Below are positions 28,101 to 49,100 of a DNA stretch of 64,000 bases, piece after piece. This DNA is from Ostrea edulis (taxonomy: Eukaryota), in the NCBI RefSeq assembly GCF_947568905.1, contig NC_079166.1, positions 63,302,001 through 63,366,000 of the forward strand. Direction: 5' to 3'. Numbering within the stretch: position 1 is the stretch's first letter; the number at the start of each line of letters is the position of its first letter. Position numbers and translations under genes: made by a program. The notes under the pieces are model-generated. The model ran no database searches. It was not told the DNA's origin and was given only the letters and a program-made list of their open reading frames with translations.

Positions 28101-31100
28101 AGTTAGGTTTACCATAAAGCCAAAATAGAAAAAAAAAGGGAAAACGCACAAAAAACTGCGAATTGAAAATTAAAATAGAGTGCAGAAGTGAACATAGATT
28201 GCTCATTGAATTAAATCTACATAAAACTTGGAGGAAAAGACAGAATAAAGAATTATTGACATTAGCAAGATATAGATACATGCACCAGAAATTAGATTGA
28301 TTAATTGTATCTTGCTAAACGTCTCTCTCGAGAATTTTTCACTGATATGGAGACGTCACCAACTCCAGTGAAGGGCTTCAAATTACGGCCATTGAGCAGT
28401 GAGGGTTCTTTAGCGTGCCACACCTACTGTGACTAGGGACATCCGTTTTTAATGTCATCTCCGAGGACCCGTGACATTCACACCTTATGCCGAGCGTTTG
28501 ACGATGAAACTGTCGCTACCTGTTTTAACGACTTAGATCTGTCGCGGCCAGGAATCGAATCCCGGCCTTCCGCATGCAGGGCGAACGCTCTGACCTCTGG
28601 GCCACCGCGGCAGTCCAGAGATTAGAAGAAAAAAACTTTATTACTAATAGAATCTTAAGCACGCTAAAAAGGTTTGGGGACAAATCAAACCAACATGATG
28701 TCATCTTCACAAGTTCTCGATTCGCTTATTCTCATCTACATCGTCAAAGATTTAGTATTATTCTGATGATTTCCCACAATTCCTTTAGCGGACTTGATAT
28801 GTTATTGCTTTTTACAAGTAAAAATATCAACTAAGAGCTAACGTTTGTGAAAGTGTGCAATAAACTTTTGTGTAACGAAAATGGATTAATTCAAAGTAGA
28901 AAACAATACAGCGTTTTAACGTTGAATATAAATCCTAACTACGATACATTTTGATAGGTCCCTTGCTATCAAAATATCACTAGTGGGTATTAATCTCCCT
29001 ATTCCTATACACCATTCACCATTTTTAGGATCCACAGGAACTTTGCCTATCTTTGCATAGTATTTCTTCATCAGATGACTTAACACTGTGGCACTCTTTC
29101 TTTTACATCCGTCTGTGTTCCCACATGATCGTGACTTTCGATGTTTTTTGCTCCCGCGTTTCTTTGAACGCCTATTCTGAAATATTCAATTCGAACCGTG
29201 ACCACTTCCTTTTATAAATAAGCGCTCAAGCTACGCTTAGCGCTTAAAAATGAAGTTCATAATAAATTTCACCTATTTGATACAGATATTATATTAAGCA
29301 TGTGTAACTGAACAATCGATGTTGATGTGACTGGACTCCATATATTCTGTACACGGGGTTATTTTCACACACCTTTATTTTCGCATTTCGACACTAGCAG
29401 ATGGTTTCACCACGTTTTAAATTCGCCCTGACACAACTGTGTTTATAAAAAAGAGAGATCAGAGAGAAAATGGTTTCGCCTAGTCTTAGATTCACCCACC
29501 GACAACGAGTGCGAAAGGAGCGAACTTATTACGTGGCGAATATTTCCCTGTGTACAGCAATGCTATTTTGGATTACCTGTCTGTCCTCGTCAATCTGGAA
29601 TGAATAAGATATTGATTATGTCTCTTGATCATTGCCATACTTCAGTGGAAAAACATATCTTAATAAAATTAGCAATTTAGAATGTATGNNNNNNNNNNNN
29701 NNNNNNNNNNNNNNNNNNNNNNNNNNNNNNNNNNNNNNNNNNNNNNNNNNNNNNNNNNNNNNNNNNNNNNNNNNNNNNNNNNNNNNNNNNNNNNNNNNNN
29801 NNNNNNNNNNNNNNNNNNNNNNNNNNNNNNNNNNNNNNNNNNNNNNNTTTCGTCTGAGTACATTATTTTAATGTTATTAATGATGACCATATTGACACTG
29901 TACATAAGAACAATCTGATTATGTAAAACATTTACAGTGTCTGACGTATAGCACTATCAAATATCAAATATGGCCGGTGGGGATCCGGGTTAGAATAGGT
30001 CCTCAGTACCCCTTGCTTGTCGTAAAACTTAAAGAGGCGACTAAATGGAGCGGTCCTTCGGATGAGACTCTAAAACCCGAGGCCCCCATGTCACAGCAGG
30101 TGTGGCACGATAAAGATCCCTCCCTGCTCAAAGGCCGTAAGCGCCGAGCATAGATCAAAATTTTGCAGCCCTTTACCGGCAGTGGTGACGTCTTGATATG
30201 AGTGGAAATTCACGAATGGGAGGTTAAACAACATACAGTCAATCGATCAACTATCAAGCATCGAATATTTTAGAAATACGTTTCTTTTGAAAATCCATGA
30301 GGGCATGAACTGCTTCATTAAGCGCATTAGTATGAACAGTACGCCGGTGTGATTCGTGACAGTTCATACCCTCATGGATTTTCAGAAATGACGTTTATTC
30401 ATTTTATTTACATTCTATTTTCATTTATGTTGGATTTCCAAGTCGATAAGACAGACATATTATATTTATCTGTATTAATACACCCATTCTTTACAACCAC
30501 AACGCATTCATAAGGAAATGGCTTTCATTAAGATTTGTAGAGATATCAAAGGTAAAAAACATTGGTAATGTAAATATAACTAGATATACAATAAAAGCAG
30601 TTAACAACACAGGCACTTGTTTCATACTTGAGTCCCCCTCCTTAATGATATTAAGGAGTGGGGACTCATGTATGAAACAAGTGCCTGTGGTTAACAAAGT
30701 TGCGTACAATGCTTCAATAGCATCTTTTCTAATAAGACTACATAATGCTGTGGTTTACATTTTTATATTGTATGTATCTCATATACACATACTGCACTAA
30801 CAATACCCCCGGATCACATAATCCTATATCCCAGTGGAATTTTTAGCGAGTCACATATTTAGCCATTTTCCAATAAAAATGGGTATATATATTTAGTGAG
30901 ATCTAATTTTAACGCTTTTATAATTTCTAGAAAGATAACTATTATCTCCAATATGGTATAAGTTGTTAGCAATATTGATTTTAGCAATCTCAACACCTTC
31001 GCTAATAATGCCAAAATTAAATCCTCGCTAAAATTTTGTTTATACAGTATAGTCTTTAGTCTCGTGTATTGCATTTCCTCTAGAAACAGCTTATCTGGTT

Positions 31101-46182: not shown

Positions 46183-49100
46183 AAAAAAAAATCGAGGAAT
46201 TTTAAAGTCTTATATCTATTATGTTCTAAAATTTGTGGAGTCATCGGGATTTTTTCTGTAGATATTATACATTTTAAAAGCTGTGCATAGAATCTTCGTT
46301 AAAGCAGATTAAAACGTTGTTTCAGAATTTAGAGAGTTAAATCAGACCCATACTATACAGGTCTTTAAATTCTCATTGAATACCTTATAGCGGGGTTTTT
46401 TTTCCCGCGGGATGATAAATTTGGCTTGTTTTAGCGGTATGATAGCCAAATATGCAACCAAATGCGACTTCAATATTTGCAAGAGAAATAAATCTTCCTT
46501 GTCTGCCAAAATTCATTCCGCTAAAATTAGTAGCATACCTTTGAGCAATCAAATCGCCAAATTTTAGACCCGCGGAATAAACTCTATGCTGTAGCAATTT
46601 TCTTGAACCGATTTCATAGCGACGCGATTCATCGTCATTATCTTATTTTGAAACCATTGCAATGCACCGTAGATATGAGATACTATTACACATCGATGTG
46701 TAAGCAAAACGATAATGTAAGACTAATAGAATCCTTCATTAGTACGAGTGTGAGATAGGGAAATTCCACCGAGGGGACAAGATTCGCAGTCTTCGACGAG
46801 GCTTTGCCGAGTCCTAGACAGCGAATCTTGTTCCAGAGGTGGAATTTCCCTATCCCACACGAGTAAATAATGAAGGATTATTTTTCTCACATTTTAACTA
46901 CAGTTTAGTGCATAAAATTAGGAGTTTTCAGAAAATTTTAGATTATCAAAATCCTCATTTGAACTCCGATGCAAAAACTAATTAGATAGGCAGAAAGAGC
47001 ATACCCGAAAATGGTTTACACTGTAAGTGTAAACTAAAAACCCCAAGGTTGTCCACCAGAAAGCTATACTACATTAAAATTTAAAGATAACAATGCAAAA
47101 TATTTTTACTTCACTGTGTAACGTAGATCTTCACCGTGTAACGTAAATCATAGAAAATATGTTACGTCAATCAAATGACAGAAAAATCTCACATGGCCGT
47201 CTCACATGGGTAAAGTCGATCTCACACTGGTGATAATGTGAGAAATAATTATCCTAATTATAACGAAGTGTTAGATACATGTTCTTCATTCAATTCATAA
47301 AAACGTCATGATCTGTAGGTGTTAATTGCTTTCATTACATGATAATCCAAATATTATTACAGAAACATTTCATTTCTGTAAAACAATATTGGGGAATTAT
47401 CTTTATGGTTGATATGTAAAAAAAAATTTCTTCCTTCATCAATTCTCCCTGTTACTGATAGTTTTATTTTATGTTTAAAAGTCTGCCTGTAGAAAATGAG
47501 AAATTCCTCATAGTATAGATATGATAACACGTGGCATCCCAGACATTGATCACAATACAGACAGCTCATAATATATCAGCCCCCCCCCCCCCCCCCCCCC
47601 CAACGTTTCTTGTTCCAGAGGTTTGCTTGACTACAATGTATTTCAGCAATAGTAATAACTTCCCTGACACAAATGCATTGGATAAGAAGATGTAGAGCAG
47701 AATTATCCCCATATCACTAAAGAAACGAGAGTTATCTGCCCTTTATAATGGTTAATGTAGTGACTTCAATGGCAGATCAGGTCCAACACAAATATCATAA
47801 TTTAATTTAAATAAAAGCAATGTTATATTTCAACATTATATAAATATATGATATAGCTTAATAAAAGAAAAATGGCCGATTGCAAAACTTAAAAGTACGA
47901 AGTTCTGCCTGGCTTTCCATTGAAAGCATCTTAGCCACAGACAAAATATTCACTATGGTAAAGAACCAGCCATTTTCTACTATACCTGCATTTTTCTCGG
48001 GTCTATGCTTTTTGATGATAGTGTAGTATTTCTCCATTAGATAACTCAGTCGTCTGGCACTTTTCACTCTACATCCGCCGGAGTCTGCGCAAGACGGACC
48101 TCGCCAGAATGCTTGTCGTCTGTGTCGATGAAATCGACGTTGAAAGGGAAAGATAGGCTTCCTGTACGATTTTCGTCGATTCGGACGTTTAATCTAAAAA
48201 CGAAATTGTTAATGTTGCAGTTAGGTCACAAGCTTACAGCAAAAAAGCAGACGTTATCACGTGTATTCAGAATGTGTACATTGTAACATATTCAGAATAT
48301 GAGTTTTAAGAGTAGATGGGTATACTACTTCTTTAACCCTGTGATCAGAATCGTTACGGCATGGGGAATCCATGATGTGTACCTGAAGTTTACCAGTGTT
48401 ACTTTGGTAACGAAACAGTACTGCTTCAATGTCATCTAATTTTCGATAAAAGCATTGGACTTTCGATTTCACTTAAAGCTGTATGACCCGACGTTCATGA
48501 ATGTATTATTTTTGTACATAATTACTTTAAAGCAGATTAATTACTTTCCCTTAATTACATGCTTGAAAACATCTGCATGTAAAAGAAAACAGTGCGAATA
48601 TTATTTAGAAAGTAAATATAGTGGGTACATATATAAATCATCCCATAATAGACGTCTATAAGTAGACCCACGCGCGTCAGGGGAATCCCAACATGATGTA
48701 TTAACTCACACGCAACTGTCTAGTTTTAAGGCTGAAAGAGAGTAAAACAACGAATTACGAAGAGGTATTTGATATTTTTATTTTTATTAAACTTGTGGTA
48801 CGGTACTGTTATAACAAAATACACAGCTTTACACAGATAAGACCACCGATGATCTGAAAGTTTGAACTGGTCACGTGACTGTCACTTGAAATGGCAGAGT
48901 GACGCGGTTATTTGTAAACATCGATTTAAAATCATATAATTTGGGTTAAAACAGGTGAAATAATTCATGACATGTCGTACAGTCTCATAACTACATATAT
49001 GCGATGATTTAATAGCGTTTTTACGAGATGGAAAAAAATATTGTAATTCGGACCATATAGCTTTAAAGAATAGATATCACAAAATATTCATAAATGGAAT

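Follow-up and report, generated by a model that had tools for sequence, protein, structure and literature searches.

Tandem nacrein-like carbonic anhydrases of Ostrea edulis with a polybasic insert loop: a putative polyanion tether with a candidate convertase site

We analyzed a 64,000-nucleotide stretch of the Ostrea edulis genome (NCBI RefSeq assembly GCF_947568905.1, contig NC_079166.1, positions 63,302,001 to 63,366,000; hereafter the window, with positions counted from its first letter) that holds two tandem genes for nacrein-like alpha-carbonic anhydrases (CAs). The genes, copies A and B, lie on the minus strand with both reading frames intact, and each contains an exon that places a polybasic stretch in the loop where the nacrein family carries its inserts. 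The original prediction for this exon was a charge inversion relative to the family, and the comparison bore it out. We measured the insert of 33 oyster and mussel nacrein-like proteins between the close of exon 4 and the last cysteine. Its net charge lay between +4 and +12 in the six A/B proteins taken from databases and between -27 and +2 in the other 27. We infer that the loop is a selected polycation. We tentatively favor a combined reading in which this polycation would tether the enzyme to polyanions and, in the A lineage, would be cut by a furin-type convertase.

Gene models were built from a protein-level comparison of the two regions, from the reading of splice sites and from a search for signal-peptide exons, and the first model had seven canonical exons per gene. 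Copy A spans 43087–56477 (exons 56477–56309, 55864–55703, 53127–52961, 50922–50830, 48193–47986, 44417–44251 and 43269–43087, with a candidate microexon at 49744–49727 between the fourth and fifth of these). It has AG/GT sites at every exon, and its seven-exon translation matches the RefSeq protein XP_048768998.2 ('nacrein-like [Ostrea edulis]', 382 residues; P0153) with no mismatch. Copy B spans 25196–38179 (exons 38179–38017, 33607–33446, 32270–32104, 31501–31409, 29594–29577, 29176–29020, 27804–27638 and 25357–25196). Without its 18-nucleotide microexon (29594–29577) it encodes 356 residues, and the eight-exon translation is identical, residue for residue, to the RefSeq nacrein-like protein XP_048768982.2 (362 residues; P0155). 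Homology searches were run exon by exon at first and then with P0153 and P0155. A representative search with one conserved exon returned the Crassostrea virginica ortholog P0017, and a word search with P0017 led to the named family.

The CA domain PF00194 matched exons 2, 3 and 4 of copy A and the core exon that follows the basic exon in both copies. This next core exon scored 58–59 bits in each copy against a cut-off of 27, and a genome-wide PF00194 scan recovers both genes. The Pfam search gave no PF00194 match in the basic exon or the last exon, and the basic exon alone, searched against Pfam and PDB, returned no family and chance matches only. Copy A has the three zinc-binding histidines (H143, H145 and H168) and the other catalytic residues E155, E166 and T300, all with counterparts in copy B. 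In a 45-sequence alignment the counterparts of H94, H96, H119, E106, E117 and T199 (CA II numbering) are invariant or at least 90% conserved. The HxH motif aligns with the HFHWG of solved CAs, and His64 is also present (NGHS). Copy A carries all four family signature peptides (QSPIN, GSEHS, PMEA and an 11-residue peptide), and in copy B each of the first two differs by one residue (QSPVN and GSEHA). Both genes are thus predicted to encode intact, secreted-type nacrein-like CAs, the signal peptides being recognized by eye and by an N-terminal helix in the structural models. Both are putative CO2 hydratases; a different nacrein-like paralog of Crassostrea gigas is enzymatically active (PMC5618409). 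Both proteins should be named nacrein-like rather than nacrein, as they lack the Gly-X-Asn repeat.

The basic exon of copy A (47986–48193, minus strand) opens with an acid-free polybasic segment (48193–48092) that contains an RHRR motif at 48127–48116. A C-x5-C pair (48091–48071) follows, and then a helix reading CRVKSA...LMEKYY. Its counterpart in copy B (29020–29176, minus strand) has the same layout: a polybasic segment (29176–29126) with RKSR at 29140–29129, C-x5-C at 29125–29105 and a KRKSA...LMKKYY helix. The basic peptides quoted in the original prediction lie in these two segments, and its counts of lysine and arginine (13 of 34 residues in copy A and 10 of 17 in copy B) are correct, as are the two arginine-rich motifs. 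Also borne out were the canonical AG acceptor and GT donor at both exons, the lack of any tandem G-x-N repeat in either protein and the claim that this exon has the largest length difference between the paralogs (208 versus 157 nucleotides; the next largest in the seven-exon model is the last exon, at 183 versus 162). Its label as exon 5 needs correction, because it becomes exon 6 of 8 once an overlooked 18-nucleotide microexon is counted. For the same reason, the statement that no acidic residue precedes the first cysteine holds within the exon but fails for the insert, which the microexon opens with acidic residues (IDEDRQ in copy B and the candidate IEGEPK in copy A). When all six frames of the window were scanned for 17-residue stretches with at least 10 lysines or arginines, a single further instance came up, and it is a poly-A artefact. 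Such rarity argues that the composition is not due to chance.

The placement of this exon in the insert loop of the nacrein family also stands. Exon 4 ends near residue 148 of CA II, the family motif lies downstream of the insert, and CA II residue 183 is matched by residue 18 of the core exon that comes next. Together, the microexon and the body exon contribute 58–75 residues in place of about 17 of CA II. Counted up to the family's last cysteine, the insert measures 41–46 residues in the A type and 30–31 in the B type versus 5–7 in ordinary CAs. It sits in a surface loop that links the central beta-strand (CA II residues ~141–150) to the next helix (~155–167). AlphaFold2 models of copies A and B each have a mean predicted local distance difference test (pLDDT) score of 86, and the best Foldseek match of the copy A model is human CA II (target TM-score 0.86–0.90, E ~1e-23). 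The score falls below 50 in the basic stretch (residues 205–227 in A and 207–214 in B), and a confident helix begins just past the second cysteine (residues 244–256 in A and 231–245 in B). The models therefore predict that the basic stretch is exposed and disordered.

Elsewhere in the family the same site carries very different inserts. Their length ranges from 5 to 121 residues across the family, and the 27 other proteins have D/E runs, Cys-rich modules or short neutral loops here. After the insert, the motif C-[KR]-x-[KR]-x-A-x-x-L-S...ME-KYY is found family-wide. The original prediction had explained the five residues between the two cysteines as a collapsed Ca-binding repeat. The comparison did not support this: mussel and several oyster members, including basal acidic types, have a Cys-to-Cys mini-loop of five or six residues before the motif. 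From this distribution, it is more likely that the short mini-loop is ancestral and that the Pinctada repeat expanded from it. The prediction had also placed an acidic string before the repeat of Pinctada nacrein. Word searches with the oyster and mussel queries did not return canonical Pinctada nacrein, only the P. imbricata homolog P0269. The string is plausible from P0269, which has ...VGSEGFGDAPDDEEC followed by a long acidic stretch; the head of this insert reads ...GFGDAPDDEEC, and its body is rich in Asn and Asp.

A tree of the 33 nacrein-like rows and 12 outgroup CAs, computed by a quick search after removal of the insert columns, recovered the nacrein-like proteins as one clade with 100% support. 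Copies A and B and their orthologs formed a clade (99% support) within a larger group that also contains Cys-rich and mildly acidic types; the strongly acidic types branched further out. The nesting of the A and B types among acidic and Cys-rich relatives shows that the basic loop is derived, and the trait is shared by the whole A/B clade. Furthermore, the A-then-B tandem order is kept in C. virginica and Saccostrea echinata, so the duplication and the basic loop are older than the split of these genera. The basic loop had a single origin that preceded both the A/B duplication and the divergence of Ostrea, Crassostrea and Saccostrea.

The composition of the stretch has been kept while its sequence has changed. 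We compared the stretches before the first cysteine in eight proteins (A from four species, B from three and one Logan transcript, with Ostrea, Crassostrea and Saccostrea among the sources). Together they hold a single D/E and 68 K/R in 199 residues, and the cores of the same eight proteins contain 10.4% D+E. A naive binomial test of the acid deficit gives P ~8e-9, a value overstated by the relatedness of the sequences. The pre-cysteine stretches are 9–54% identical and the cores 55–84%. Retention of composition without retention of sequence points to selection on charge and argues against pure drift. Drift is nonetheless an alternative: the loop could be a tolerated, fast-changing, low-complexity insert with no function of its own, its basic make-up being an inherited mutational bias of purine-rich DNA. 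The wide range of inserts at this site (5–121 residues and net charges of -27 to +12), the low identity of the pre-cysteine stretch among close relatives and its predicted disorder are all consistent with such an origin. Drift should, however, restore acidic residues, and only one appears in the 199 positions of these eight strongly diverged sequences. In addition, both paralogs retain the trait in every species examined, covering at least three genera, and a block with the pattern R-x-[KR]-R-x-x-x-W...S-C is conserved among the A orthologs. We consider an origin by drift rather unlikely.

The conserved block of the A orthologs includes the candidate convertase site. All four copy-A orthologs have R-X-K/R-R in one aligned column (RHRR, RQKR, RLKR and RYKR), and the P4 and P1 arginines are invariant. 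The furin-type motif suggested for copy A in the original prediction therefore gains support from position, although in O. edulis alone its presence is expected from composition. By composition alone, the strict motif arose in 13–71% of shuffled segments. Because shuffles yield the motif so often, only its positional conservation carries weight. Two cysteines lie on opposite sides of the putative cut in the 45-sequence alignment: C71, which is nearly invariant, and C304, which is invariant (copy A numbering). By motif position we take them to be the counterparts of the Cys23–Cys203 bridge of extracellular CAs. Such a pair could hold the two chains together after cleavage. The A type also lacks Cardin-Weintraub heparin-binding patterns, which a search located in O. 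edulis copy B and in two further proteins of the B type. Their absence from the A type led us to reject them as a feature of the clade.

In the combined reading, the basic loop would bind the enzyme electrostatically to polyanions in the compartment where the shell forms: to matrix proteins of acidic type, to sulfated polysaccharides or to the surface of the carbonate itself. Tethering of this kind would place bicarbonate production where the mineral grows. In the A lineage, a furin-type convertase would then cut the loop at the conserved R-X-K/R-R and turn the polycation into a free tail at the new C terminus, with the two chains kept joined by the beta-sheet and by a disulfide of the Cys23–Cys203 type. 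We regard this scheme as a reasonable working proposal, to be held tentatively.

Several observations weigh against it. The convertase site is less regular in the B orthologs: two of four have RPKR or RQKR, and the B copies of O. edulis and S. echinata have the minimal R-x-x-R only. For O. edulis copy A, shuffling the segment gave a strict furin-type motif 62% of the time. The eight sequences used to assess composition share one origin of the basic loop, so the statistics overstate their independence. Many family cores are already basic, and the loop is not the sole source of positive charge. Action in shell formation rather than in another tissue is a presumption. Finally, the search for O. 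edulis sequencing runs returned four DNA-like runs and no RNA run.

A second alternative assigns the loop mainly to processing. A furin-type convertase would mature or activate the enzyme into two disulfide-held chains, and the basic surroundings would serve to make the cut efficient. The shared column of R-X-K/R-R in all A orthologs and the RPKR and RQKR of two B orthologs speak for this, as do the location of the site within the stretch of pLDDT below 50 and the flanking of the cut by C71 and C304. Furin cleavage is also documented for the bivalve shell protein Pif-177. Yet O. edulis copy B has no strict motif, and in the most basic sequences composition already makes one likely (47–71% of shuffled segments from O. 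edulis A and B and from the Logan B-type protein). Cleavage also needs four residues, not 15–34 acid-free ones. We judge it unlikely that processing is the loop's main role.

A variant of the tether model takes in the whole family in oysters, which would keep two oppositely charged sets of secreted nacrein-like CAs, the many acidic-loop paralogs and the old A/B pair. The disordered basic A/B loops might form complex coacervates with the acidic-loop set or with the acidic shell matrix and in this way concentrate bicarbonate production within the matrix as it forms; the convertase cut would free the tail and tune or end the association. This is a speculative extension to which we give little credence. 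We give less still to the idea that the polycation acts as an electrostatic antenna, concentrating (bi)carbonate or buffering protons near the enzyme with no tether. The positive charge itself is all that favors it. In the CA II structure, the loop leaves the fold at about residues 149–155, on the face away from the active-site funnel, and at the ionic strength of sea water the steering of small ions would be weak.

The sequence of the exon itself appears sound. In four DNA runs from two studies, the copy A basic exon showed no indel, two replacement and two synonymous single-nucleotide polymorphisms (SNPs), which argues against an assembly frameshift. Its codons align one by one, in frame, to those of the S. 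echinata and C. virginica exons. No other A-type protein is as basic as O. edulis copy A, whose extra lysines and arginines arose by in-frame substitutions and not by a frameshift. We had considered a recent frameshift origin for copy A, as the +1 frame of its exon is acidic and loosely ortholog-like; the in-frame codon alignment and the indel-free runs led us to reject it. In orthologs, mRNA-like Logan contigs (P0154 and P0310 on contigs L003–L006; P0305) contain both exons, microexon and basic exon, in frame, and the homologous basic exon and microexon are thus transcribed in other oysters. The acidic +1 frame of copy A and the lack of an O. edulis RNA run might suggest that the basic stretch is an artefact of a misplaced acceptor, of a frameshift in the assembly or of pseudogene decay. 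This is almost certainly not so, given the same boundaries in the independent RefSeq annotation, the in-frame codon alignment with S. echinata, the indel-free DNA runs, the catalytic residues of two intact genes and the homologous basic stretch in the ortholog contigs.

The microexon provides an acidic head to the insert. In copy B (29577–29594, minus strand) it is flanked by ttcattccag and gtaatc, with ATTGACGAGGACAGACAG between them, and reads ATT GAC GAG GAC AGA CAG between the ag and gt of its splice sites. The product, IDEDRQ, accounts for the six residues that follow exon 4 in P0155 and precede the basic exon. No second place in the window encodes it, and it is required to reproduce P0155. 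The copy A candidate, also 18 nucleotides long (49727–49744, minus strand; IEGEPK), runs from phase 0 to phase 0 and is absent from the RefSeq model. Its sequence ATTGAGGGAGAACCAAAA is preceded by ttccttttgcag and followed by gtatgt, and its single variant in the DNA runs is a synonymous SNP at 49739. It agrees with the ortholog microexons in place, length and I-E start, and the ortholog proteins contain theirs. We think that this candidate is used in O. edulis, as its likeness to the orthologs would suggest. The ortholog microexons encode IEEDSM and IEKKKR in C. virginica A and B (L001:14211–14228 and L001:24629–24646) and IEEKSK and IEENKK in S. echinata A and B (L002:15007–15024 and L002:22862–22879). 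The composition of the microexons is 17 D/E and 13 K/R in 48 residues. With them included, the insert opens with two (A) or three (B) acidic residues.

Gene models differ in their treatment of this element. The microexon is included in P0305, the protein of a Crassostrea mRNA-like contig, and skipped in the older, UniProt-derived C. gigas models P0302 and P0304. The 18-nucleotide exon is often lost in gene prediction, as in RefSeq copy A and these two C. gigas models; other RefSeq models keep it. As it is missing from several public gene models, the sequences used for cloning or proteome searches may be six residues short.

A distant O. edulis paralog on another chromosome (P0095) has a 57-nucleotide head exon at the position of the microexon, and its product starts with IDDDED. 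A small acidic head exon is therefore old. The P0095 locus lies at positions 3937431–3942835 of chromosome C6 (G000:C6; head exon L007:500–556), and the +1 frame of its head exon reads basic. A change of frame in a GA-rich head exon, if it took place long ago, would be a possible route to the charge inversion. The intron of copy B between exon 4 and the microexon also contains an assembly gap (29689–29847), about 95 nucleotides upstream of the microexon. The end of exon 4 (31409) and the start of the microexon (29594) are both in phase 0, and the RefSeq protein is complete without the gap, so the reading frame is untouched by it. No coding exon lies between exon 4 and the microexon in C. virginica or S. 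echinata. The gap is purely intronic and has no coding role.

Nacrein is a shell-matrix CA split by a Gly-X-Asn repeat (PMC4066178). Like Pinctada nacrein and N66, the proteins of the window are secreted alpha-CAs of a mollusc-specific clade with an insert in the same loop. They share with the Pinctada homolog P0269 a basic motif and helix after the last cysteine (CRVKSA...LMEKYY here and ...C-KTSKAKVLS in P0269). Unlike nacrein (compared here by description only) and N66, they have no Gly-X-Asn repeat and their pre-cysteine stretch is basic rather than acidic. Moreover, their two cysteines are five residues apart with no long repeat between them, and the proteins are smaller (362–388 residues). 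The C. gigas proteins F1 and F2 carry a D/E run at the insert site and have isoelectric points (pI) of 4.7 and 6.5 (Song et al., 2014; PMC4066178). They, too, are secreted oyster members of the family without the Gly-X-Asn repeat and with the same signature peptides, but the clade of the window differs in its acid-free basic stretch, its pI of 8.7–9.8 and its separate, nested position. The nacrein-like proteins of Mytilus (MgNACR and relatives) have a similar C-x5-C mini-loop before C-K-V-R-F-A-K-K-L-S...MEKYY and no low-complexity repeat. Their inserts differ in being about 17 residues long, with net charges of -2 to +2, no polybasic stretch and no furin-type motif.

Two other shell proteins offer functional analogies. 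Pif-177, a secreted Pinctada protein, is split at the furin site RMKR (PMC3091754), and KRMP-3 has a lysine-rich region that, in vitro, inhibits the precipitation of CaCO3 and affects the shape of calcite (PMC4498902). Both convertase cutting and polybasic regions are thus used in bivalve shell formation. Pif-177 and KRMP-3 are functional analogues only, with unrelated folds and no enzyme domain. The annotated genes, the family and its variable insert were already known. For the basic-loop subclade, the conserved convertase motif and the microexon, the literature search found no description, with a basic-insert query that was too broad to inform; looking for the two accessions, and for furin together with nacrein-like proteins, likewise turned up no account of these proteins.

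The inserted loop of nacrein-like CAs is believed to connect the supply of bicarbonate with the control of crystals, and descriptions so far have been of Gly-X-Asn or acidic loops. The A/B lineage, with the same enzyme core and insertion point and the opposite charge, amounts to a natural charge-swap experiment. It allows one to ask if loop charge sets the location of the enzyme and its effect on calcite growth in oysters.

Alpha-CA genes are numerous in the O. edulis genome. The genome-wide scan gave 83 PF00194 exon matches on chromosomes C1–C6, C9 and C10, and many of the genes are clustered, for example at ~2.07–2.11 Mb of C1, ~37.13–37.18 Mb of C4, ~5.78–5.83 Mb of C5 and ~12.07–12.14 and 24.80–24.81 Mb of C9. 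This is consistent with the known expansion of the family in oysters.

The non-coding parts of the window are rich in repeats. A minisatellite at 33062–33463 (13.8 copies of a 29-nucleotide unit, 84% matches) overlaps the end and donor of copy B exon 2 (33446). Further minisatellites occupy introns and the spacer at 53905–54945, 54765–55313, 50261–50725, 40397–41678 and 35538–36099, with units of 39, 10/20, 31, 28 and 47 nucleotides, respectively. ARAGORN placed a tRNA-Ala (TGC) at 28539–28612 (minus strand), within the intron of copy B that comes after the basic exon; this is either a real tRNA gene or a tRNA-derived short interspersed nuclear element. In copy A, the intron that separates the candidate microexon from the basic exon holds a very high-copy repeat (48410–49123), whose summed contig depth is 10^3–10^4 times that of its flanks in all four DNA runs. 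A dispersed repeat is present in four copies, 66–84% identical over 122 nucleotides (30086–30207, 41675–41796, 53911–54032 and 57683–57804), one of which adjoins the assembly gap in the copy B intron.

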